A program made the translations under genes and the position numbers. The notes beneath the pieces were generated by a model that was not told the DNA's origin, made no database searches, and saw only the letters and a list, made by a program, of their open reading frames with translations. Of a stretch of 64,000 nucleotides of DNA, positions 6,246-64,000 are shown piece after piece (within the stretch, counting starts at the first letter, position 1; each line of letters starts with the position of its first letter). Source of the stretch: Scyliorhinus canicula (lineage: Eukaryota); the NCBI RefSeq assembly GCF_902713615.1, contig NC_052146.1:130737875-130801874 (forward strand). Direction: 5' to 3'.

Positions 6246-8340
6246 TTTTTATAACCTTTGGCCTTACCCGCCCGTTGAGCCCAACCCTTATTTCATATCT
6301 CTGTCAGCCAGCTTCTCCTACTCCTCCACCCTATCCCATAAATCCCCCAGATATTTAGTCTTGAAACTATTTTCATTATCTTTATGCTATTCCCCATTCA
6401 CTCACACCAGCTTACCAGCGGGGTGGCTCTCATTAAAGCCCTTTACATTAATGGCTCAGATATTAGGGACTTCACGTTGCCCTTCTCCCCTACTTCCCTC
6501 TTTTTAAAAATATTTTTTATTTGTTTATCTATTTTTCCCCCTAAATATTATATGTTTTTTCTTTTTCTTCCCCCTCTTAAACATACACATTCTTTACCCC
6601 AAATTATTTCCGAAACATTTATATACAATCCTAATATAATACAAACAGCCAAATATGTTAACAACAAACATCAAAACCGTATAAAATGGAGATATCTATA
6701 ACAAAACATTACATCAAACCAATCCAACCTAATAATAATATCAAAGCCTCACCGCAAGACTTAATTAAGGGCAAAGGTCTTTGGAGTTGAATGTCACTCG
6801 TAACCTTGGCGGTTAGACCATTCTGAATCGTACATCCTCCTTATCGTGTGCTGCTTTCGCCTTGCTGAAAGATATATGTTTTTTTGCAAGCTCAGTTGTC
6901 ACACCTTGACAGATGTGAATGGCGTTGACTTCCCATCTCACTTCACTTTCAGTTTCGCCCATTACAATACTTAGCCTGATATCTGCTGAAGCAAACGATC
7001 ACTGCTATTGGCGATTGGTTCGCCTATGATTTTGGGCGAAGTGATCGGGGGCCCTGTCTAGCTCAGAGAGTAACCTCCTCTTCTTCACTCAACAGCTTCG
7101 CAAACATTCTGGCAAAGTATTCTGTTGGTCTCTGGCATTCCAGCCCCTCTGCCAAACCCACAATCTGAAGATTATTCCGTCTTGACCGGTTCTCCAAGTC
7201 TTCCATCTTTGTCCTCAAGTCATTGTTGATGCTATGAACTCTTGCTACCTCTATTTTCAGAAATTCTAGGTGGCCACTATGTATTGATAGTGCCTCTTCC
7301 ATCCTTTCAAAACTTCCCCATATTCCTGCACTGTCACTGATGCCTTGCTCAAAGCCTCCTTTATTGCGGCCAACATATCCTCTAGTGACTGCTTCAGAGT
7401 TTTCATCATTTATTTACCTTGTCTTCCAAAGTGTTTGGTGAGTTGTATTTCAAATTCAGCAGCCATGATTTCTAAGAGGATATCTACTGTGACAAGTGTA
7501 GCAGTACCATCTGACGGTTTTATTTCTGCCATTTTGATTGTACTTTTATCTTTATTTTGAACGACTGTGGTAAGCCACAGCAGCACTTTGGGGGGGGGGG
7601 GGGGGGGTGGTCCACTACTGTGGTAAATGCAGCAGCAGCATTTAATGAACCGGGGTGGTTGAGGGTGGGGGGGGGGGGGGGGGAGGAGGGGGGGTTGGGG
7701 GTGGGGGGGGAGGGGGGGTTGGGGGGGGGGGGTGAGGGGGGGTTGGGGTGGGGGGGGGCCCCTTTTAACTACCTGCGCACTTTCAGCAGCAGCATTTGGC
7801 CGATTTCTTTTTTTTATTGTTGTAAGTGCACCAGCGTAATATCAACAGCAGCATCTGATGAATTCACTCCCGCCATTTTGACCACACTATCTGACGGCAT
7901 TATCACCTCCACCCTACCTTCCTCGGGGCTCGAGCCTTCATTCATCACCATTGATGAAGAAACACCCATCTCTGTCCTTTTGTTCAACAGTTATTGCTGG
8001 GCTCGGCGTGCCTTTAAAATTGATAGTCACCGGAACCAATCTTCGGCGAATTGAAAACAAAACAGCGAAAGAAGAGCGAGAATCTAGGATATCAACGGGA
8101 ACAATTCCAGGGAATTTTTTTTTAATCCCAAAAGAAAAGGGAGGAAGAAGAGCGATAGTTGAAGATGTCAATGGAACTAATCTCCAGTGAATTTTGTTTA
8201 AAAAAGGGAAAGAAGAGCAAGAATTGAGGACGTTGACAGGAGCCACCAACTTGCGGCCATCTCCTACATATCGTCAACCAGAATGGTTGAGGAGAAGCTA
8301 GATGCCCATTGAAATAATATAGTCTGTCAGTGGTTACAAG

Positions 8341-8686: not shown

Positions 8687-9033
8687 AGCCTGGATTTCGA
8701 ACTGAGTGTCAGCATAGTACTTGCACAATTCATTTCAAATGACTCATTGCCAACATTAAGATAATTCTAGGCCTCATTGTTGCAGCCACACACATGGATA
8801 ATATGAGCTAAGGGAATGATCCACACCTACAGGACTGCATCCCAAAAAGGAATCAGCACTTTATGAGGCAAAGGGCAAAATGTGGCAGGGACAAGAATTT
8901 CTCATTGACTCCATGAGCCACAGATACACTGTCGCTAAACTATCACATTAGGAAACATCTGATCCTTAACAAAGTAAATTATCAAGCAAGAAGCCTATTC
9001 ACTTACCGAGATTAGCTAAAGATTAATGGTGAT

Positions 9034-10363
9034 TGATGTACCATCAATTCACTGCAAGACGACGAGAGTGAGGGAACATAGGCTTTATTACCCAAGAACC
9101 TGCCTGCCTGAGACTGCTGTAACAACTGAGCGCCGCCCCCAGGCAGCCACCTCGGGGTAGTTAGAAATATAGTCCACGAGGAGGACGTAGTCCCGGCCTT
9201 TTGCGTGAAAGAGATCAATGCCAACCTTGGTCCATGGGGACGATACCAGTTCATGCGGCTGCAAAGTCTCTTTCGGCTGAGCCGGCTGGAACCGTTGGCA
9301 TGTTGGGCAATTGAGGACAGTGTTGGCGATGTCCTGATTGATGCCAGGCCGATATACTGCCTCTCGGGCTTGCCAGCGACACTTTTCCACCCCCAGGTGA
9401 CCCTCGTGGAGTTGGCGAGGATAAGCTCCCGCATGCTCTGGTATTATTATCCTGTCCAGTTTCATTAGTATGCCATCGACCACTGCCAGATCATCTTTTA
9501 TATTATAGAACTGTGGGCACTGGCCGTTTTGCCATCCATCTGTGAGATGGCGCATGACCCGTTGGAGTAGTGGATCCCTGGCCGTTTCATGGCGAATCTG
9601 TACGACCCTTTCATCAGTGGCCGGAAAATTGGATGCGCAGAACTCAACATGGGCGTCGATCTGGCAGACGAAGTCCGACTGCTCGCACGGCATGGTGATG
9701 GAGCGAGAGAGTGCATCGGCTACAATGAGCTCCTTGCCCGGGGTGTAGACCAGGTCGAAATCATAGCGTCGGAGTTGAGGAGGATACGTTGTAGGCATGG
9801 CGTCATATCGTTGAGGTAGTTCTGTATGATGTGAACCAGTGGCCTGTGGTCCGTTTCGACCGTAAACTTGGGGAGTCCATACACGTAATCATGGAATTTG
9901 TCAATCCCCGGGCGTGGAGGAGGCATTGCTTGAGGGCGTCGGAGGGAGGCGTTGCAGAGGAGTCGAGGTAGGCCTCAAAACAGCGGAGCCAGTGGGGGAA
10001 GATTTCCTTAGCTTCTGCAGCTCGTGCGTCGAGTTCTAGTTTATCAGGCTTCAGAGTGGTTTCCATAGTGATGTCTTTAGGTAATAAATTGACGTACCAA
10101 CAATTCACCTCAAGATGATGAGAGCGAGAGAACATAGGCTTTATTACCCAAGAACTTGCCTGCCTGAGACTGCTGTAACAACTGAGTGCCCCCCCCCCCC
10201 CCCCAAGGCGGCTGGTCTATATACCGTCCGGGGGGGCAGAGCCAGGGGCGGAGCCCACCAGGGTTCCAGTCCAATACATGGAAGGAGATCACATTACCAT
10301 TGCTTGGCCATAGGCCACAGTACTATACAGACAACTTATATTATGGTGAATACATTCACCACA
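9034..10363 (-). mobile_element. Chimeric, deleted Gypsy LTR element (family C): 5' LTR 10090-10363, gag start, foreign RNaseH-integrase fragment, partial 3' LTR 9034-~9150
   Basis: 5-bp TSD GTGAT (9029-9033 and 10364-10368); gag METTLKPDKLELDARAAEAKEIFPHWLRCFEAYL; pol piece ETDHRPL...YTPGKELIVADALSR...HEGHLGVEKC...CPTCQ...VGIDLF. Confidence 0.85.
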
Positions 10364-13268: not shown

Positions 13269-15295
13269 GTCCATCTCCCTTTGGAAGTCCGAGACCCCGT
13301 TGGTGACGCTGAATGGAACCCTAAGAAAATGGTAGAGGCGGCCATCTGCCTCGAAGGCAGTGTATGGGCGGTCTGCCTTATGGATGGGGAGCTGGTGGTA
13401 GGCGGATTTTAGGTCTACAGTTGAGAAGACCCGGTACCGTGCAATCTGATTGACCATATCAGATATGCATGGGAGGGGGTACGTGCCGAGCTGCGTGTAC
13501 CAATTGATGGTCTGGCTGTAGTCCACGACCATTCAATGTTTCTCCCCAGTTTTCACCACTACTACTGGGCCCTCCAGGGGCTTTTGCTGGCCTCAGTGAT
13601 GCCTTCCCGAAGCAGCCGCTGGACCTCGGACCTGATGAAGGTCCTGTCCTGGGTGCTGTACCGTCTGCTCCTGGTGGCGACAGGTTTGCAATCCAGGGTA
13701 AGGTTTGCGAATAGGGAAGGTGGGTCGTCCTTTAGTGTCGCGAGGCCGCACGCAGTAAGGGGTAGTAGGGGCCCGCCGAATTTCAATGTTAGGCTCTGGA
13801 TGTTACACTGGAAGTCCAGGTCGAGTAGCAGGGCAGCGCAGAGGTTGGGGAGGACGTAGAGGCGGAAGCCGCTGAATTCTATGCCCTGGATCGTGAGTGT
13901 GGCTATACAGTACCGCCGGATCACCACGGAGTGGGACCCAGAGGCCAAGGAGATTCTCTGATTGGCGGGATGTACCGCGAGGGAGCAGCGCCTTACTGTA
14001 TCGGGATGAGTGAAGCTTTCGGTGCTCCCGGAGTCCAGCAGACAGGATATGTCATGCCCATCGATCTTCACGCTTGTCGAGGTGGTGGCTAGATTGTGCG
14101 GCCGAGACTGGTCAATCGTGACCGAGGTGAGTCGCGGCTGGTCGTCGCTGGTGTCGGACGATGGGGTGCCCGGGAGGCACGGGTCCTGGTACGATGGTGG
14201 CGCCCATGTGCCGTGGGGAGACAAGAGGTGGACAAGATGGCGGCGCCCACGGGCCGCATGTGGCGGGGGTTGAAAGAGATGGCGGCGTCCATGGGCCACA
14301 CTTGGTCTGAGGAGGGGACGATGGTGGCGCCCACTGGCTGCACGTGGTCCGAGGAGGGGAAGATGGCGATGCCCACTGTCAGTACGTGGGGGGGGGGGGG
14401 GGGGGGGGGGGGAGTTCGGGGTGATAGCGGCGACTGAGCGGGTCTGGCACACCGTGGCAAAGTGCCCCTTCTTGCCACAGGCCTTGCAAAGGGCGCTGCG
14501 GGCCGGGCAGCATTGGCAGGGATATTTTTGCTGCCCACAGAAGTAATATCTGGGGCCCCCAGGGTTGGCTGGCTAGCGCGTGGCACAGGTGTATGATTGG
14601 CTGAGTGGGGTCCCCGGTGGGGCGGCCGTATGCGGAGTCCACGATGTGTAGGAGGAGTGGGCCGCGTGGCTGGGGGTGTAGGCCTGGATATTGCACGAGG
14701 CGAGTGTCATCGATAGCGCCAGCTTTTTGGTTTCCGTGAGGTCGAGCGTGGCCTCCTCTAAAAGTTGCTGGCAGATGTGGTTGACCCTATCCCCGTGACG
14801 AAAGCGTCCCGCATGAGGGGGTTCGAATGTTCCGTGGCCGTGACGGCCTGACAGTCACAGTCTCTGACCAGGGGAATTAAAGATCGCCAGAAATCTACGG
14901 ACTGACCAGCGAGCTGACTACGAGTAGAAAGTATGTATCTGGCGAAGAGCGTGTTCGTCCGCTGGGCGTAGTTCCCTTTCAGTAGCGCCATGGCTTCATC
15001 GTAGGTTGGCGCGTCCTGGATAAGCGGAAAAACTTTGGATCTCAGCCGCGAGTAGAGGATCTGGATCTTCTGAGCTTCCGGAATTGGGTCTGGTGCAGAC
15101 CTGATGTAAGCTTCGAAACAAGCTAGCCAATGTTCAAAGTCCTTTTTGGCATTGCTTGATTGCGGATCCAGCTGCAGGCGATCCGTCTTGATGCGGAGGT
15201 CTGTCTTCTGAAAACTTTAGTGGAATAAATTGATGCACGATCAATTACACAAAGACGAGAGTTGAATACAACTGAGGCTTTATTACACTAAGATG

Positions 15296-15514
15296 AAAAT
15301 GAAAAAATGAAAAATGAAAATCGCTTATTGTCACGAGTAGGCTTCAATGAAGTTACTGTGAAAAGCCCCTAGTCGCCACATTATGGCGCTTGTCCGGGGA
15401 GGCTGGTACGGGAATCAAACCGTGCTGCTGGCCTGCTTGGTCTGCTTTAAAAGCCAGCGATTTAGCTGAGTGAGCTAAACCAGCCCCTAGTGAGCTAAAC
15501 CGGCTCCTGTGGTT
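15296..15514 (-). mobile_element. Same tRNA(Lys)-like SINE, inserted in the 5' LTR of family B
   Basis: Reverse complement of the 13085-13268 family; absent from the partner LTR. Confidence 0.85.
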
Positions 15515-18250: not shown

Positions 18251-18815
18251 AACATAGAACATAGAACATATGGTGCAGAAGGAGGCCATTCGGCCCATCG
18301 AGTCTGCACCGACCCACTGAAGCCCTCACTTCCACCCTATCCCCGTAACCCACCAACCCCATCTAACCTTTTTTGACACTAAGGGCAATTTAGCATGGCC
18401 GATCCACCTAACTTGCACGTGTTTGGACTGTGGGAGGAAACTGGAGCACCCGGTGTGGTAAACCACTGTTAGTATATTATATGTATTGTGGTAAACTGTT
18501 ACTGTATTACATGTATTGTGGTAAACCACTGCCTGATGGCTCCGCCTCCCCTCAGGCTCGGTATAAAGGTGGCCGACCTCCGGCCCTGCCCCAGTTCGGG
18601 ATCAGAGGCCAGGAGGCTTTCTGTTTAATTTATTAAAGCCTCAGTTTTGTTCACTACTCGTCTTGTGTTGATTGATGGCACATCACGGAGGAAACCCACG
18701 CAGACACGGGGAGAACGTGCAGACTCCACACAGACAGTGATGCAGCGGGGAATCAAACCTGGGACACTGGCGCTGTGAAGCCACAGTGCTATCCACTTGT
18801 GCTACCGGGCTGCCC
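18251..18815 (-). mobile_element. HE1-type SINE split by a solo LTR
   Basis: (catagaa)n tail at 18251, V core interrupted at gagcacccgg|, head ends ...gctgccc near 18815. Confidence 0.85.
18454..18685 (+). mobile_element. Solo LTR of the Mag-like lineage
   Basis: TGTGGTAAACCACTG...GGCACATCA; TATAAA, ATTAAAGCC; threefold tgtggtaaa repeat in U3; flanking duplication reduced to CGG. Confidence 0.85.
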
Positions 18816-28848: not shown

Positions 28849-29180
28849 ATAGGTTGAGAGCTGAGAGGAGGACGAACTGCTTCTGCAGAGGCTGGTGAAT
28901 TTCTGGAACGTGCTGTCCTATAGTGCGGTGGGGTCTGATTCATTGAATGGTTTCAAGAAAGAGATCGATAGATCTCTGATAAAAAAAACAGGTTAAAGGA
29001 ATGTGGGGAACAGGCAGGGAAGTGGATTTGAGAGTCATGATCTGATTGAATAGGGGAGCAGGTCCGAAGAGCTGAATTGTCTGCTTCTGCTCCTGATTCC
29101 TGGACCCTGGGAATCTCGGAGGGTCAGAGAGACCTTGGTGTGCATGTTTATTGATTCTTTAAGGTAGCAGGACAGGTGGA

Positions 29181-29423
29181 TGTGGTGAGATAACCACTGT
29201 AGTTATGTGTACTGCAGTAGGGGGATGTATGCCTGTACCTGTAATACAGGTTCCTCCGGTCAGCCCCTGCTGGCTAGCTCCGCCCACAGGGAGCTTATGT
29301 ATAAATGTATGAGAGCTGCTCAGACCCTCAGTCTACTGTTGCGGATGGAGGGACAACATCGTACAGCAATAAAGCCTCTATTGTACTAGTCTCTCGGCTT
29401 TGAGTATAATTGTTAGCGCCACA
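29181..29423 (+). repeat. 5' LTR of family A (GC box, TATA-like TATAAA near 29300, AATAAA at 29368)
   Basis: Direct repeat of 33550-33792. Confidence 0.97.
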
Positions 29424-29440
29424 ATTTATTGCTGTACGAT
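29424..29440 (+). promoter_or_regulatory. Non-tRNA primer-binding-site position, complementary to LTR 29358-29373
   Basis: TTTATTGCTGTACGAT is the exact reverse complement of ATCGTACAGCAATAAA. Confidence 0.8.
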
Positions 29441-29452
29441 TTCCCAGTCACC

Positions 29453-32400
29453 ATGGACATCAGAGTCAAGCCTGACCGTCTGCAGCTGGATCCACATTCG
29501 CCTCACGCCAGAAAAGACTTTGATCACTGGCTCGCAGTCTTCGAGGCCTACATCTCTTCAGCAGACCCTCCCCCGACGGAGGCTCAGAAAAAGCAACTCC
29601 TGTACTCCAGACTTAGCTCCAGCGTCTTTCCACTCATTCGAGATGCGACAGACTACACCGCAGCTATGGAACTGCTCAAGGAGAACTATGCACCATCGGC
29701 GAACACCCTGTTTGCGAGGCATCAACTTTCTACTCGCGTCCAGCAGCCGGGTGAGTCGATTGAGGACTTCTGGAGGGCCCTTATACCTCTGGTACGAGAC
29801 TGCGACTGCCGGGCCATCACAGCCACGGAACATTCTGATTTACTCATGCGCGATGCCTTCGTTACAGGCATTGCATCGGACCCCATCCGGCAACGACTGC
29901 TGGAAGGGGTTGCCCCCGACCTCGCGGCCGCAAAGGCCCTGGCGCTCTCCATGACGGCCGCCTCCCGTAGTGCGCACACTTACTCCGCTAGCCACTCGGC
30001 CCACCCGTCCTACCCCTCGTGGACCCCGCAAACGGCTCCCCAGGCCCATCCGTCCCACCCATCGTGGACCCCGCAAACGGCCCCCCCAGCAGCCGCCCCC
30101 GCGCACTATGCCTGCGCTGCCCGCCGCACCGCACCCCCTGGGGGTCCCCACTGTTACTTCTGCGGCCAACAGAAGCACCCTCGCCAACGCTGCCCGGCCC
30201 GCACAGCGACCTGCAAAGCTTGTGGCAAGAAAGGCCACTTTGCAGCGGTGTGTCAGTCCCGGACGGTCGCCGCTATCGCGCCGCCGGTCCCCACGCCTCA
30301 GCCGCTCCCTCAATGGGCCCCGCCGTCCGCTTCCCCCGACCCCACGTGCAATCAGTGGGCGCCGCCATCTTTTGCCGGCCCGCCACGTGCGCCCCATGGG
30401 CGCCGCCATCTTCATCCACCACAGCCATGTGCGTTTTATGGGCGCCGCCATTTTGTTCCGACCCCATAACGTGCGCTCCATGGACGCTGCCATTTTACCC
30501 ACAGGTACTGCGGATGCCGCCATCTCGTCTCCAGGGGCCGCCATCACGGGACACGGGTCGCTACCGCTCCTCGTCGGACTCATCTGACTCAACCGCCGAC
30601 CAACCACTGCTCGCCTCCGTTACGCTCGACCAGTCCCGTCCTCGCAACCTGGCACCCTCTTCCACATAGGTGCTGGTCAACGGCCATGTGACCTCCTGCC
30701 TCATCGACTCCGGGAGCACCGAGAGCTTCGTCCACCTGGACACGGTAAGGCGCTATTCCCTTGCGATCCATCCCGCCGACCGGCAGATCTCCCTTGCCTC
30801 CGGTTCCCACTCTGTCCCGATCCGGGATTTCTGCCTGGTTAAACTCACTGTACAGGGTGTGGAATTCGACCGTTTCCGTCTGTACATTCTCCCCGACCTC
30901 TGCACTTCACTCCTACTAGGCCTGGATTTCCAGTGCAATCTCCAGAGCCTCACCCTCAAATTCGGTGGACCCCTACCTCCCCTCACCGTTTGCGGCCTCG
31001 CGACCCTCAAGGTCGAGCCCCCCTCCCTCTTTGCCAATCTGACTGTGGATTGCAAGCCCGTTGCCACCAGGAGCAGACGGTACAGCACCCAGGACAAGGC
31101 CTTCATCAGGTCCGAAGTCCAGCGGCTGCTTCGGGAGGGTATCATCGAGGCCAGCAACAGCCCTTGGAGAGCCCAGGTGGTAGTGGTTAAGACCGGGGAG
31201 AAGCACAGGATGGTCGTGGACTACAGCCAGACCATCAACCGGTACACGCAGCTCGATGCGTACCCCCTCCCCCGCATTTCTGATATGGTCAATCAGATTG
31301 CACAGTACTGGGTCTTCTCTACTATTGACCTGAAATCCGCCTACCACCAGCTCCCCATCCGTAAATCGGACCGTCCCTACACTGCCTTTGAGGCGGACGG
31401 TCGTCTGTACCAATTTCTGAGGGTTCCCTTCGGCGTCACGAATGGGGATTGGTCTTTCAGCGAGAAATGGACCGAATGGTTGACCGGTACGAATTGCAGG
31501 CCACCTTCCCGTACCTCGACAATGTCACCATCTGCGGCCATGACCAGCAGGACCATGATGCCAACCTTTATAAATTCCTCCACACCGCATCTCTCCTTAA
31601 TCTCACGTACAACAAGGAGAAATGCGTGTTCCGCACAGACCGCTTAGCCATCCTCGGCTACGTAGTCCAAAACGGACTACTGGGGCCCGATCCCGACCGC
31701 ATGCTCCCCCTCATGGAGCTCCCAATTCCCCACTGCCCCAAGGCCCTCAAACGCTGCCTTGGGTTTTTCTCTTATTACGCCCAGTGGGTCCCGCAATACG
31801 CAGACAAGGCCCGGCCACTTATCCAGTCCACACATTTTCCCCTCTCGGCCGAGGCACAACAGGCCTTCGCCTGCATTCGATCTGACATAGCCAGGGCGGG
31901 GATGCACGCCGTAGACGAGACTCTGCCTTTCCAAGTAGAGAGCGACGCTTCAGATGTCGCCCTTGCCGCCACGCTGAATCAGGCCGGCAGACCCGTGGCA
32001 TTCTTTTCACGCACCCTCCACGCCTCCGAAATTCGGCATTCCTCTGTCGAAAAGGAAGCCCAGGCAATCGTTGAAGCGGTGCGGCACTGGAGGCATTACC
32101 TGGCCGGCAGGAGATTCACTCTCCTCACTGACCAACGGTCGGTAGCCTTCATGTTCAACAACACGCAGCGGGGCAAGATCAAGAATGACAAAATCTTGCG
32201 GTGGAGAATCGAGCTCTCCACCTTTAACTACGAGATCTTGTATCACCCCGGCAAGCTCAACGAGCCCCCAGACGCCCTCTCCCGAGGTACATGTGCCAGT
32301 GCACAAGTGAACCAGCTCCGTGCCTTGCACGACAGCCTTTGCCATCCGGGGGTCACCCGCTTGTACCATCTGATCAAAGCCCGCAATCTGCCCTACTCCG

Positions 32401-33437
32401 TCGAGGAAGTACGGACAGTCACCAGAGACTGCCAGATCTGTGCGGAGTGCAAGCCGCACTTCTACCTGCCAGATCGCGCGCGCCTGGTGAAAGTATCCCG
32501 CCCCTTTGAACGCCTCAGCGTGGACTTCAAAGGGCCCCTTCCCTCTACCGACCGCACCACCTACATCCTTAGTGTGGTCGATGAATTTTCTAGGTTCCCC
32601 TTTGCCATCCCATGCCCAGATATGACGTCTGCCACCGTCATCAAGGCCCTGGATTCCATTTTCGCCCTGTTCGGTTTCCCCGACTATATCCACAGTGACA
32701 GGGGATCCTCATTCATGAGCGATGAGCTGCGTCAGTTCCTGCTCAGCAGGGGTATCGCCTCCAGCAGGACGACCAGCTACAACCCCCGGGGAAACGGGCA
32801 GGTAGAGAGGGAGAACGGGACGGTATGGAGGGCCGTCCAGCTGGCCCTACGGTCCAGGAACCTCCCAGCCGCTCGCTGGCAGCAGGTCCTCCCTGACGCG
32901 CTCCATTCCATTCGGTCGCTACTGTGCACCGCAACTAACAGTACACCCCATGAACGTGTTTTTGCCTTCCCTAGGAAGTCCACATCCGGAGTGTCGCTCC
33001 CGACTTGGCTCACGACTCCGGGCCCAGTCCTTCTCCGTAGGCATGTACAGCACCACAAGGCGGATCCCCTGGTGGACAAAGTACGCCTTCTCCACGCCAA
33101 CCCTCAGTATGCCTACGTGGAGTTCCCCGACGGCCGCCAGGACACAGTCTCGCTCCTGGACCTGGCTCCCTCAGGTGCCGATCCCATGCCCACACCCCTT
33201 CCTGCGCCAACCCCAGCGCCCCCCTATTCGTCCCCATCAGGTCCATCCCTCATCCCCCTGCCCACCCTGGAGGACATGGAAGATTTCGGCTTGCTCTCGG
33301 AGTCATCCCGCCAGCAGCCAGCACCAACACCGCCAGCACCTGCACCATCGGGGCCATCACCGCCTGTGCCGACGTCACCACCACAGCTACGCCGCTCACA
33401 GCGGAACGTCCGACCACCGATTCGGCTCAACCTGTAA
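29453..33437 (+). pseudogene. gag-pol polyprotein with 3 lesions (frameshift ~30375, stop 30667-30669, frameshift ~31448)
   Basis: Two CX2CX4HX4C knuckles (CYFCGQQKHPRQRC, CKACGKKGHFAAVC), protease LIDSGS, RT IDLKSAYHQ..VPFG..YLDN, RNase H SDAS/EKEA/TDQ/DALSR, integrase HHCC and VDFKGP/HSDRG/GQVER; no chromodomain. Confidence 0.95.
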
Positions 33438-33549
33438 CCTGCTAACCGGATGGACTCTTGATTTTCCTTGTTGGACCCTCTTGTAAATAGCATCCTTTGT
33501 ATTAGAGTTACATGTCACCCCCGCCGGACTCATTTTTACAGGGGGTGAA

Positions 33550-33792
33550 TGTGGTGAGATAACCACTGTAGTTATGTGTACTGCAGTAGGGGGATGTATG
33601 CCTGTACCTGTAATACAGGTTCCTCCGGTCAGCCCCTGCCGGCTAGCTCCGCCCACAGGGAGCTTATGTATAAATGTATGAGAGCTGCTCAGACCCTCAG
33701 TCTACAGTTGCGGATGGAGGGACAACATCGTACAGCAATAAAGCCTCTATTGTACTAGTCTCTCGGCTTTGAGTATAATTGTTAGCGCCACA
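33550..33792 (+). repeat. 3' LTR of family A
   Basis: Direct repeat of 29181-29423. Confidence 0.97.
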
Positions 33793-34051
33793 GTGGATAA
33801 AGTGGTTAAGAAGGCATACTTTATTAGGCAAGGCATTGAATTTAAGAGCAAGGCATTGAATTTAAGAGCAGGGATGTTATGCTGGAGCTGTATAAAATGT
33901 TGGTCTGGCCATAGCTATGATATTTTCTGCAGTTCTGGAATCTACATTATAGGAGGGATGTGATAGCGCTGGAAAGGTAGCAGATGAGATTTTCCAGGAT
34001 GTTGCCTGGGCTGGAGAATTTTAGTTATGAAGTGAGATTGGATAGACTGGG

Positions 34052-52119: not shown

Positions 52120-54480
52120 CTGGGAGGGGTGGGGGGTCCCTGGGAGGGGTGGGGGGTCACAGGGAGGGGGTGGGAGGCGATTAGAGGGGAGGGGGTTGTC
52201 GGGGGGGAGGGGCTGGTTGGAGGGGGGGGTGTCAGGGAGGGAGGGGCTGGTTGGAGGGGGGTGTGTCAGGGAGGGAGGGGCTGGTTGGAGGGGGGTGTCA
52301 GGGAGGGAGGGGCTGGTTGGGGGGGGTGTCAGGGAGGGAGGGGCTGGTTGGAGGGGGGGTGTCAGGGAGGGGGCTGGTTGGAGGGGGGTGTCAAGGAGGG
52401 AGGGGCTGGTTGGAGGGGGGTGTCAGGGAGGGAGGGGCTGGTTGGAGGGGGGTGTCAGGGAGGGAGGGGCTGGTTGGAGGGGGGTGTCAGGGAGGGAGGG
52501 GCTGGTTGGAGGGGGGGTGTCAGGGAGGGAGGGGCTGGTTGGAGGGGGGGGGGTGTCAGGGAGGGAGGGGCTGGTTGGAGGGGGGTGTCAAGGAGGGAGG
52601 GGCTGGTTGGAGGGGGGTGTCAGGGAGGGAGGGGCTGGTTGGAGGGGGGTGTCAGGGAGGGAGGGGCTGGTTGGAGGGGGGGTGTCAGGGAGGGGAGGGG
52701 CTGGTTGGAGGGGGGGTGTCAGGAGGGAGGGGCTGTTGGAGGGGGGGTGTCGGTAGGAGGGGCTGGTTGGAGGGAGGGGCTGGTTGGAGGGGGGGGTCAG
52801 GGAGGGAGGGGCTGGTTGGAGGGGGGGGTGTCAGGGAGGGGCTGGTTGGAGGGGGGTGTCAGGGAGGGGTGGGTGGAGGGGGGGTCAGGAGGGAGGGGCT
52901 GGTTGGAGGGTGTCAGGGAGGGAGGGGCTGGTTGGAGGGGGGTGTCAGGGAGGGGGAGGGGCTGGTTGGAGGGGGGTGTCAGGGAGGGAGGGGCTAGTTG
53001 GAGGGGGGGGGTGTCAGGGAGGGAGGGGCTGGTTGGAGGGGGGTGTCAGGAGGAGGGGCTGGTTGGAGGGGGGGTCAGGGAGGAGGGCTGGTTGGAGGGT
53101 GGTGTCGGGAGGGGGGCTGGTTGGAGGGGGGTGTCAGGGAGGAGGGGCTGGTTGAGGGGGGGTGTCAGGAGGGAGGGCTAGTTGGAGGGGGGGGTGTCAG
53201 GGAGGGAGGGCTGGTTGGAGGGGGTTCAGGAGGAGGGCTGGTTGGAGGGGGGAGTCAGGGAGGGAGGGCTGGTTGGAGGGGGAGTCAGGGAGGGGAGGCT
53301 GGTTGGAGGGTGGGTCAGGAGGGAGGGGCTGGTTGGAGGGGGGTTTCGGAGGGAGGGGCTGGTTGGAGGGGGGTGTCGGAGGGAGGGGCTGATTGGAGGG
53401 GGGTGTCGGAGGGAGGGGCTGGTTGGAGGGGGGTGTCAGGGAGGGAGGGAGGGGCTGGTTGGAGGGGGGGTGTCGGGGAGGGAGGGGCTGGTTGGAGGGG
53501 GGTGTCGGGGAGGGAGGGGCTGGTTGGAGCGGGGTGTCGGGGAGGGAGGTTCTGGTTGGAGGAGGTGTGTCACAGGGAGGGGGGACTGGTTGGAGGAGGG
53601 GGTGTCACAGGGAGGGGGGAGGGGCCGGGTGGGTGTCGGAGGGAGGGGCTGGTTGGAGGAGGGCATGCCACAGGGAGGGGTGGGCTGGTTGGAGGAAGGG
53701 GTGTCAGAGGGAGGGGGGAGGGGCTGGGTGGGTGTCAGGGAGGGAGGGGTTGGAGGAGGGGGTGTCAGAGGGGGGGAGGGGCTGGGTGGGTGTCAGGGAG
53801 GGAGGGGCTGGTTGGAGGAGGGGATGCCACAGGGAGGGTGGGCTGGTTGGAGGAGGGGGTGTCACAGGCAGGGAGAGGCTGGGGGTGTCAGGGAGGGAGG
53901 GTCTGGTTGGAGGTGGGTTTGTCATGGAGTGAGGGCTGGTTGGAGGAGGGGGTGTCACAGGGTGGCAGTGGCTGGTTGGAGGAGGGGGGTGTCATGGTGG
54001 GAGGGGCTGGTTGGAAGACGGGGGTGTCACAGGGAGGGGCTGGTTGGAGGAGGGGGTGCCACAGGGAGCGGCAGATACAGAGGGTGTCACAGGAAGAGAG
54101 GGAGGGTTTGATTGGTGGAGGGGAGTGGTTAGAGGGTGTCACAGCGAAGTATGAGCTGGTTGGAGGAGGGGGTTTCTGAGAGAGGGGGTGCCACAGGGAG
54201 GGAGGGGCTGATTGGAGGAGGGGGGTGTTACAGGAAGGGGCTGGTTGGAGGAGGGGATGCCATAGGGAGGGAGGGGCTGATTGGAGGAGGGGGTGTCACA
54301 GGAAGTGGTGGTTGGAGGGGCTGGGTGTTTGAAGGAAGAGGTGCCACAGTGAGGAGGGGGTGTTGAAAGTAATGTCACAGATGGGCGGGGGCTGGAAAGG
54401 GTGTCACGAGGGAGGGGGTGGTTTGGATGGGGTATCACGCGGGAGGGTGTGAAGAGGGAGGTAGGGTGTCATGGTGGGGA
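52120..54480 (+). repeat. G-rich minisatellite, ~30-33-bp unit gggagggaggggctggttggaggggggtgtca
   Basis: Dozens of visible tandem units, homogeneous at 52200-53000 and progressively degenerate to the right. Confidence 0.97.
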
Positions 54481-62324: not shown

Positions 62325-62357
62325 GGACCAACACCATGTGTGCTTCCCCTACATCGC

Positions 62358-64000
62358 TGATGCACAATCAATGATGACTAAAGCGAGGTTGTAGTACAAC
62401 TGAAGGCTTTAATAAGCTAGATGTTTCCCCCAGCAGCTTGGGTACAGAAAGGAAGCTGCTGGGGTGGCACGGGCTCTTATACCCCACCTTGCAGGGCGGA
62501 GCTACCATATAGGCTCGACCAATAGAAAACATCCATTATCTACCAATGGTGTTCCAGCATTACTAGGTACCGTAATAGCTCTACACAGACTACCACATTC
62601 ACCCCCTGTTTTTACAAAAGTCTGGTGGGGGCGGTGGCTTCATATTACAACATGGTAACGTGGTAGATGTTATGATTATGGAGGTACCGTAATGCCTCCG
62701 TACAGCGTTTTACCTTATTATTGTAACTATTTGCAATTTTATAATTAACTATATACATGTTGAAATGAAGCAATCAGTCGATCGGGGGCCCTGGTCATCC
62801 TCTGTGATCGTCGAAGCATCGGTGGTGACGCCGATGGAGGTTTGGGCGTCTGTGACTCCGGGAGCATGGTTTCGATCTCTGTGGCAGCTTCAACACCCCT
62901 AGACGGCGCTGGTGGGTAAGCTGATTGATCTGGGAAGGGAGCGTCTGGGGGGTGCGTCAATGGGCGGGGGCGGGGGGGGGGGGGGGGGGGGGTGCCTAGA
63001 CAGGGCCATATCGGCGAAGAACTGATCCTCCTGGGAAGGGGGCAGCTGTAAGGTGCACCGGTGGGGTGGGACTGGTGGCGGGGGTTTGCGCGGGGATCTG
63101 TAGGTCTCGTAGGGAGACCGTGTCTTGACGGCCATTGGGGTTTGCCACGTAGGCGTACTGGGGGTTAGCGTGGAGAAGATGGACCCTCTCGACCAACGGG
63201 TCCGACTTGTGCGCCCGCACGTGTTTTCGGAGCAGGATGGGTCCGGGGGCTGCCTGCCAGGTTGGGAGCGAGGTCTTCCTGGGGAAAACAAGGAGACGTT
63301 CGTGAGGTGTTTGGTTGGTCGTGGTGCAGAGCAGGGACGTGGTGCAGAGCAGGGACGTGGTGCAGAGCAGGGACCGGATGGAGTGGACAGCATCCGGGAG
63401 GCGGACTTGAGGTCCACCGTGGAGAAGACCTTGTATTGCGTGATCCTGTTTACCAGGTCAGATATGCGGGGGAGAGGGTACGCGTCCAGCTGCGTAAACC
63501 TGTTGATGGTCCGACTGTAGCATCCTATTCTTCTCCCCGGTCTTTACCACCACTACTTGAGCTCTCCAGGGACTGTTGCTAGCTTCAATGACTCCTTCCC
63601 TCAGTAGCCGTTGGACCTCTGACCTAATAAAGATCCAGTCCTGGACACTGTACCGTCTGCTCCTGGTGGCGATGGGTTTGCAATCCACGGTGAGGTTTGC
63701 AAACAGGGAAGGTGGATCGACCTTGATGGTCGCGAGGCTGCAGACAGTGACTGGGTATAGGGCTGCCGAATTTGAAAGTTAGACTTTGGAGGTTGCACTG
63801 GAAGTCTAACCCTAGGAGTGTGGCTGCGCAGAGGTGGGGAAGGACGTAGAGCCAGTAATTTTTGAACTCCCTTCCCTGGACAATGAGATTTGCTACACAG
63901 AACCCCTTTATCTATCTCTACTGAGTGGGAACCAGAGGTCAGGGAGATTTTTTGATTAACGGGGTGGATGGGGAGAGAACAGCGCCTTACCGTGTCGGGG
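62358..64000 (-). mobile_element. Internally deleted Gypsy (Mag-like) element, family E; 3' LTR 62358-62597, continues past the window end
   Basis: LTR TG...CA plus PPT; integrase C-terminus LHANPQYAYV..QDTVSLRDL; RT N-terminus STVDLKSA fused directly to the integrase end; protease remnant. Confidence 0.9.

Follow-up and report, generated by a model that had tools for sequence, protein, structure and literature searches.

How do Ty3/Gypsy retrotransposons start reverse transcription when their 5' long terminal repeat (LTR) is not followed by a tRNA-type primer-binding site (PBS)? This question is raised by a stretch of 64,000 nucleotides (nt) of Scyliorhinus canicula DNA (positions 130,737,875 to 130,801,874 of contig NC_052146.1, assembly GCF_902713615.1), which we refer to as the window. 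The window is dense in related LTR retrotransposons, one of which, family A, is present as a complete insertion (29181-33792). TGG was absent directly after the LTR at all four window families, and the PBS slot was instead found to hold a family-specific complement of the element's own LTR, as had been claimed in an original prediction made from this DNA. From the data described below we conclude that, in a Gypsy lineage spanning corals to sharks, the bases following the 5' LTR pair with a segment of the same LTR that ends at the poly(A) signal. Self-priming of reverse transcription is probably the best explanation for these elements.

All four 5' LTR junctions in the window shared one layout: the terminal CA of the LTR, a single A, and then 12-16 nt complementary to an LTR segment ending in A(A/T)TAAA. 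The family A LTR ends with ...GCGCCACA at 29423, and after one A nucleotides 29425-29440 are the exact reverse complement of 29358-29373. The arm pairs previously proposed for families A to D were all present at the following positions, where the 3' end of the hexamer occupies, as had also been proposed, the place that the CCA end of a tRNA would take.

29358-29373, + strand: family A 5' arm ATCGTACAGCAATAAA, which is the proposed self-primer; AATAAA occupies its final six positions (29368-29373), 16 of 16 positions form Watson-Crick pairs, and the helix is in the minimum free energy (MFE) fold
29374-29376, + strand: GCC right after the proposed cut, kept in 11 of 14 elements; two others have ACC and the mussel has TAA
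29424, + strand: family A spacer, a single A between the LTR-end CA and the 3' arm
29425-29440, + strand: family A 3' arm at the PBS position, TTTATTGCTGTACGAT
15279-15291, - strand: family B 5' arm, TTAGTGTAATAAA
15217-15229, - strand: family B 3' arm, TTTATTCCACTAA; 12 of 13 pairs
10140-10155, - strand: family C 5' arm, GTTCTTGGGTAATAAA
10073-10088, - strand: family C 3' arm, TTTATTACCTAAAGAC; 13 Watson-Crick pairs, two G-U pairs and one mismatch
47488-47499, - strand: family D 5' arm with an ATTAAA hexamer, AAGTTGATTAAA
47426-47437, - strand: family D 3' arm with the TTTAAT partner, TTTAATCAACTT; 12 of 12 pairs
62357-62420, - strand: family E LTR end (CTAGCTTATTAAA GCC ... GCATCA), which runs into unrelated sequence; being a 3' or solo LTR, it provides a negative control
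33550-33792, + strand: family A 3' LTR, with the identical arm and AATAAA at 33727-33742 and no complement downstream

Five junctions belonging to 3' or solo LTRs (the family A 3' LTR, family E at 62357, and those at 18686, 37842 and 9033) kept the segment in which the hexamer is followed by GCC, and then ran into unrelated sequence. As the complementary partner was present at 4/4 of the 5' junctions and at 0/5 of the others, we conclude that it is confined to the junction between the 5' LTR and gag. The expectation that a 3' LTR would have no downstream partner was borne out by the family A copy. The complement predicted to follow the family E 5' LTR had no copy inside the window, beyond which that LTR falls, and the sites predicted from the LTRs at 18632 and 37896 were likewise not found within the window.

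To look beyond the window, loci were chosen by gag or pol protein similarity alone and the surrounding DNA was then inspected. LTR pairs were placed by self-comparison where both LTRs were present; the junction was set by motif only in loci L003, L005 and L013. Five Tara scaffolds (L008-L012) were left out of the count of 5' junctions, as the called gene begins within gag and the scaffolds include no 5' LTR. The equivalent of the original prediction for family E, namely a complement of the element's own LTR just after its 5' LTR, held in all of the independent elements: a helix at the equivalent position, with arms of differing sequence, was found at 10/10 outside loci with an identifiable 5' LTR junction.

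L001, Hypanus (stingray): arms CTTCCAGTCAATAAAA and TTTTATTGACTGGAAG, 16 of 16 pairs
L002, Mustelus (houndshark): arms CTTGCTAATAAAA and TTTTATTAGCAAG, 13 of 13 pairs
L004, Xenia (soft coral): arms AGTGTTGAGTAAA and TTTACTCAACACT, 13 of 13 pairs
L016, Nematostella (sea anemone): arms TATGTTGAGTAAA and TTTACTCAACATA, 13 of 13 pairs
L015, Anneissia (crinoid): arms TTAGTTGATTAAA and TTTAATCAACTAA, 13 of 13 pairs
L014, Mytilus (mussel): arms GATTTAAGTTGATAAA and TTTATCAACTTAAATC, 16 of 16 pairs
L003, L005, L006 and L013 (further assemblies): family-specific arms with 12-16 Watson-Crick pairs, up to 18 with G-U pairs

In L005 four extra pairs lie beyond a one-base bulge. The 5' LTR of L006 contains a 228-nt insertion (6643-6870) resembling a tRNA-like short interspersed element (SINE), which is absent from its 3' LTR.

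Several comparisons showed that each 3' arm is specific for the LTR of its own element. Over helix positions 7-16, which lie beyond the hexamer, own arms formed a mean of 8.2 Watson-Crick pairs compared to 3.9 for arms of other elements, and none of 100,000 permutations of own versus other arms reached the observed sum. In an alignment of 11 elements, 92% of the cells of a 16-bp helix were paired, compared to 32-46% when the partner was slid by 1-3 columns; 14 of the 16 pairs showed double changes, and none of 500 shuffles reached any of five measures. Without guidance, RNAalifold predicted 13 of the helix pairs, 11 of them with compensating changes, and the helix was part of the MFE fold of 9 of the 11 single sequences. 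The hexamer and its partner also changed together (AATAAA/TTTATT, ATTAAA/TTTAAT, AGTAAA/TTTACT and AATAAAA/TTTTATT). Chance and shared ancestry were ruled out as explanations by the permutation of arms, the slid-partner controls and the out-of-sample loci. A generic scan for hexamer-anchored inverted repeats returned 26 AT-rich false positives in 400 kb of reversed sequence; because such a scan alone yields these hits, the specificity of the signature rests on its context, i.e. the LTR end, the spacer and GCC.

Which elements share this arrangement? The coding order of family A is gag with two CX2CX4HX4C knuckles, protease, reverse transcriptase, RNase H and integrase. Gag relatives were found in Scyliorhinus, Mustelus and Hypanus, and a gag profile search also reached a soft coral, a barnacle and many marine assemblies, while pol was 50-60% identical to proteins of cnidarians, molluscs, a crinoid, a rotifer and nematodes. 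Both knuckles were conserved across the gag alignment. A search for the Chromo domain gave no match at E<=1, either in the C-terminal part of the window integrase or in pol of Hypanus, Mytilus and Nematostella, and the domain was absent from the Pfam lists of the best 120 pol relatives. The gag alignment and the Chromo search thus agree with the earlier description of a chromodomain-free element with a two-knuckle gag. Because of the two CCHC knuckles and the missing chromodomain, the elements, as judged from their sequences, are not of the Tf1/sushi type. Members of the Mag clade typically have two CCHC arrays, whereas one CCHC is usual in chromoviruses (PMC2577118). The elements also resemble the Mag clade (Mag, SURL, Jule) in their short LTRs, in the order protease, reverse transcriptase, RNase H and integrase, and in a broad metazoan range that includes echinoderms; in that clade, too, the two CCHC arrays lie in the nucleocapsid and the chromodomain is lacking. 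These features suggest a Mag-like, non-chromoviral Ty3/Gypsy lineage. The name Mag-like, which the original prediction had used, is retained here as a placement by features rather than by a tree with reference elements.

Between shark, cnidarian, mollusc and crinoid copies gag was about 30-40% and pol 50-60% identical, and teleosts were missing among the best 120 pol matches and all gag matches. This patchy host range may reflect horizontal spread among marine animals. Four pol relatives that are 55-64% identical to the shark copy (P0076, P0089, P0136 and P0158) are filed as bacterial proteins, under public labels such as 'DDE-type integrase' of a Rhizobiales metagenome-assembled genome or 'transposase InsO', and one gag relative (P0019) is filed under Trichuris muris. 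These filings are probably due to eukaryotic DNA in metagenome bins or to contamination.

The position of the 3' arm argues for a role as the primer site. In 13 of the 14 elements it begins one A after the terminal CA, the mussel having a 2-nt spacer, GT. This one-base register favours priming because a minus-strand primer needs it to produce a DNA end that is competent for integrase, whereas a regulatory stem does not. The leader between the LTR and the gag ATG is only 16-41 nt long and is mostly filled by the arm, which in L006 extends into the ATG; no alternative primer site was found in these leaders, nor is there space for one. TGG was present within 0-5 nt of the 5' LTR in none of the 14 elements. 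The helices, 12-16 bp long or up to 18 bp when G-U pairs are counted, start 1 nt after the LTR, or 2 nt in the mussel. The elements therefore have the arrangement by which a large survey of plant elements recognized self-primers, in which a site 0-5 bp past the LTR is complementary to 10 bp or more of the 5' LTR (PMC6317226).

Priming by a host tRNA, a tRNA fragment or another small RNA, with the match to the LTR being secondary, would have precedents in the half-tRNA and internal-tRNA priming known from other LTR elements. Apart from TTTA(T/A/C)T, however, the site varies from one family and species to the next, and its match is in every case to the LTR of the element itself. Because the sequence in the PBS slot differs per family, no single host RNA could serve all families. 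As no site starts with TGG and no tRNA gene lies within the window, a tRNA primer was rejected, and we regard a host RNA of any kind as a very improbable primer.

In the self-priming mechanism that we propose, a stretch of R, 12-16 nt long and with the poly(A) hexamer at its end, would fold onto its complement one base past U5. By analogy with Tf1, the RNase H of the element may cut between ...AAUAAA and GCC, where the 5' arm ends, and thereby release the primer. Extension of the freed 3'-OH through the spacer A, U5 and what remains of R would then give a minus-strand strong-stop DNA of 21-57 nt ending in ...GGC. At the 3' end of the RNA, the region from the hexamer to the poly(A) site contains a matching GCC... 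sequence, to which this DNA would transfer. Finally, plus-strand synthesis would re-copy the PBS from the primer, and the arm and PBS would remain matched as families diverge. We infer that the cut, the enzyme, the transcription start, the details of strand transfer and a masking role at the 5' poly(A) signal may be as set out here.

The PBS of a retrovirus is re-copied from its tRNA at each cycle. If the arm is the primer of these elements, matching changes would arise for free, because the PBS would be re-copied from the arm in the same way. Covariation by itself is therefore no proof of selection on RNA structure. The original prediction had taken the covariation of the arms as a sign of such selection; the observation that pairing is kept as arms differ stands, although selection on RNA structure alone is not required to explain it, since re-copying of the PBS would suffice if the arm is the primer. 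The age of the copies fits this explanation. Near-identical LTRs (97.9-100%) go with perfect helices, and mismatches occur in older or damaged copies: family C, whose LTRs are 90% alike, family B, which has a truncated 5' LTR, and L013, which has a degenerate hexamer. This pattern fits a PBS re-copied from the primer each cycle.

Does the poly(A) hexamer belong to the conserved arrangement? A poly(A)-type hexamer, with one additional A in Hypanus and Mustelus, forms the end of the 5' arm in 11 of the 14 elements, or 12 if the mutated hexamer of L013 is included. In L003, however, the arm ends with GTTAGA rather than a poly(A) hexamer, followed by GCC, yet it forms a helix of at least 13 bp. 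The mussel arm shares no more than 2 nt with AATAAA, GCC is lacking there and the spacer is 2 nt long. The coincidence of hexamer and helix that had been described for the window thus extends to most elements, with L003 and the mussel deviating from it, and these two suggest, on sequence grounds, that pairing rather than the hexamer is the conserved requirement.

The hexamer is base-paired at the 5' end only, since no partner follows the 3' and solo LTRs. It is plausible that the helix masks the 5' poly(A) signal, the support for this coming from the geometry. The helix might even be purely regulatory or structural, masking the promoter-proximal AAUAAA or serving packaging or dimerization while something else acts as the primer. 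The frequency with which the arm ends at a hexamer fits this alternative, as does a partner located solely downstream of the 5' LTR, which leaves the 3' copy free, and polyadenylated transcripts show the LTR signal in use at 3' ends (see below). Masking, however, would need no exact one-base register, and nearly all of the elements have it; the short leaders hold neither another candidate primer site nor room for one; and the L003 helix ends with GTTAGA, while the mussel hexamer lies mostly outside the helix. We therefore think it unlikely that the helix has a regulatory or structural role only.

Self-priming and masking could also be combined. In such a scheme one helix, formed at the 5' end only, would hide AAUAAA and, when cut at the end of the hexamer, would make the 3' end of the primer, leaving an effective R of 12-25 nt; the arrangement would be ancestral to a metazoan-wide group of non-chromoviral Gypsy elements (cnidarians, molluscs, echinoderms and elasmobranchs) and independent of Tf1/sushi. 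We put this full scheme forward tentatively, as a possibility that is on balance doubtful.

Use of the LTR poly(A) region could be seen in RNA. Poly(A)+ single-cell RNA reads were mostly sense, covered U3 and R, and were joined upstream to the internal sequence that precedes the 3' LTR. Read depth after the hexamer fell from 56 to 37, 18 and 8 over 50 nt, the reads being 3'-biased. Because poly(A)+ read depth drops after the hexamer, we conclude that the LTR poly(A) region is used at transcript 3' ends. Logan contig ends were considered as transcript ends and set aside, since LTR edges and branch points at single nucleotide polymorphisms account for them.

Where does the transcript start? A TATA-like box was found 58-78 nt upstream of the arm in 8 of 9 elasmobranch LTR copies scanned, in which a GC-box was also kept, and a TCAGT-type initiator 28-45 nt upstream of the arm in most of the elasmobranch LTRs scanned. 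The distance from TATA to initiator was 29-33 nt in 5 of the 6 families with both motifs and 39 nt in family C. The family A motifs are as follows.

29300-29306, + strand: TATA box, TATAAAT
29328-29333, + strand: initiator-like TCAGTC, 30 nt past the TATA box; the predicted start is the A at 29330, as judged from the motif

Because these motifs place the start 28-45 nt upstream of the arm, they suggest that the arm is internal to R.

Several results weigh against self-priming as we propose it. A primer cut from such a transcript would bear a 5' tail of 28-45 nt, and if plus-strand synthesis were to copy this tail, the 3' end would be mismatched when the second strand transfer takes place. Tf1, which is primed by the first 11 nt of its mRNA, escapes this problem. 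Copying of the tail should, moreover, have grown the helix to the cap as in Tf1, yet the helix stops at 12-16 bp. The 5' tail suggests that self-priming requires the arm to be cut a second time, at its 5' edge, RNase H to remove the primer once about 13-16 nt have been copied, or transcription to start at a different site. The sequences also suggest that only about 12-25 nt of R would be left for the first transfer after the proposed cut; in L006 and Nematostella the LTR ends 20 nt past the hexamer, U5 is almost nil, and no more than 20 nt of R would be available. RNA-DNA joints, molecule ends and poly(A) loose ends were absent among those listed for the single-cell reads. Finally, a distant barnacle relative (L007) had a 117-bp repeat pair only and no such helix, its gene model being ambiguous. 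A tRNA-like TGGCGAC site in the barnacle locus was dropped from consideration, as it lies about 35 nt beyond the end of the repeat.

The same arm could also prime in trans, being supplied by the 3' R of the same RNA in circularized form or of a co-packaged second RNA. Each transcript contains the arm in both copies of R, and an origin in trans would partly avoid the topology problem posed by the 21-nt loop in L006 and Nematostella. The 3' copy, however, precedes GCC...poly(A), and it would need the same cut and carry a still longer 5' tail. In Tf1, the tested precedent, the primer is a 5' segment of the element's own mRNA, and the present sequences give nothing that separates trans from cis. 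We consider priming in trans to be quite unlikely, and continue with self-priming in cis.

Elasmobranch LTRs contained one further conserved feature in the loop of the proposed helix. A near-invariant palindrome, AATTGAT-N5/6-ATCAATT, extends from the end of U5 across the spacer A into the PBS, of which it includes the first two T residues (AATTGT..ACAATT at 29406-29426 in family A). A search of the loop for a stem like the U5-IR returned the corresponding weak hairpin, AATTGAT..ATCAATT, with a consensus energy of -0.45 kcal/mol and one doubly changed pair. The palindrome may be a U5-IR-like hairpin that competes with the primer helix, or a sequence recognized by integrase at the DNA end.

How does the arrangement compare to known systems? 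Self-priming has been demonstrated for Tf1 only, and has been inferred for Tf2, Tj1, several fungal elements and vertebrate sushi-type chromoviruses. The segment that pairs with the PBS of Tf1 and Tj1 is the 5' end of the mRNA, comprising the first 11 nt in the case of Tf1 (PMC4600332). Our elements resemble Tf1 and Tf2 of S. pombe, Tj1 of S. japonicus and sushi in lacking a tRNA PBS and in having, after the 5' LTR, a site that complements an upstream part of their own transcript, and in both cases the primer is proposed to be freed by a cut at the end of an RNA duplex. They differ from Tf1 and Tj1 in that the segment is not the mRNA 5' end; motifs place it 28-45 nt inside R, and it ends at the poly(A) hexamer. 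The helix is 11 bp in Tf1 compared to 12-16 bp here, and the two CCHC knuckles and missing chromodomain set these elements apart from Tf1/sushi, as chromoviruses usually have one CCHC. The best reading is therefore self-priming of the Tf1 kind, in a different and metazoan-wide Gypsy lineage, using an internal R segment that ends at the hexamer.

Self-priming has also been inferred for plant Tcn1 chromoviruses and for the TAR (Houba, Osr-1) lineage of Ty1/copia (PMC6317226). These plant elements show the same complementarity of at least 10 bp located 0-5 bp past the LTR, which argues that self-priming arose more than once among lineages. Their superfamilies or clades are different from those of the present elements, and the survey text consulted draws no link to a poly(A) hexamer. 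In a literature search we found neither an association of self-priming with the Mag clade nor a link between the primer site and the poly(A) signal of an LTR element, although the original descriptions of Tf1, SURL, Mag, Jule and sushi might contain an earlier remark on either point. A parallel for masking is offered by the poly(A) hairpin of HIV-1, in which AAUAAA lies in R, and hence at both RNA ends, within a stem that could limit 5' use. The HIV-1 hairpin is local and forms at both ends, whereas the partner described here lies past U5, is present at the 5' end only and occupies the primer site.

If self-priming is correct, a large Gypsy lineage distributed across animal phyla does without tRNA and takes its primer from inside R rather than from the cap-proximal end. 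LTR annotation tools that seek tRNA PBSs would then label such elements as PBS-less and would need to be changed, and host silencing based on tRNA fragments would be unable to target the primer site. The elements would also constitute a natural system that possibly couples primer choice with control of the poly(A) site. The architecture, hexamer/GCC ... CA/A/complement, provides a simple signature for genome mining.

The remaining features of the family A insertion are as follows.

29176-29180 and 33793-33797: left and right copies of the target-site duplication GTGGA, both flanks adjoining the TGTGG...CCACA LTR ends
29181-29423, + strand: 5' LTR, 243 bp, TGTGG...CCACA; found as a direct repeat with 33544-33792 at 99% identity, after which the ends were refined
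29453-30469, + strand: gag open reading frame with two CCHC knuckles; the LTR-to-ATG leader is 29 nt

This copy is decayed despite its 99% identical LTRs, as pol contains an in-frame stop (30667-30669) and the reverse transcriptase is split over two frames at about 31447-31452. A second LTR (9032-9140), partner-less and 90% alike, lies just 1,056 bp downstream of the family C 5' LTR (10088-10196, - strand), and the family C element is internally deleted or recombined. In family B the upstream half of the 5' LTR (15300-15480, - strand) is replaced by a tRNA-derived, SINE-like sequence and a run of the (ATTTTC)n type, and the gag start codon reads ACA in place of ATG. Elsewhere in the window, a long tandem array (52183-53750) contains at least 33 copies of a unit of about 32 nt, or 30 nt in one part, at 60-94% identity.

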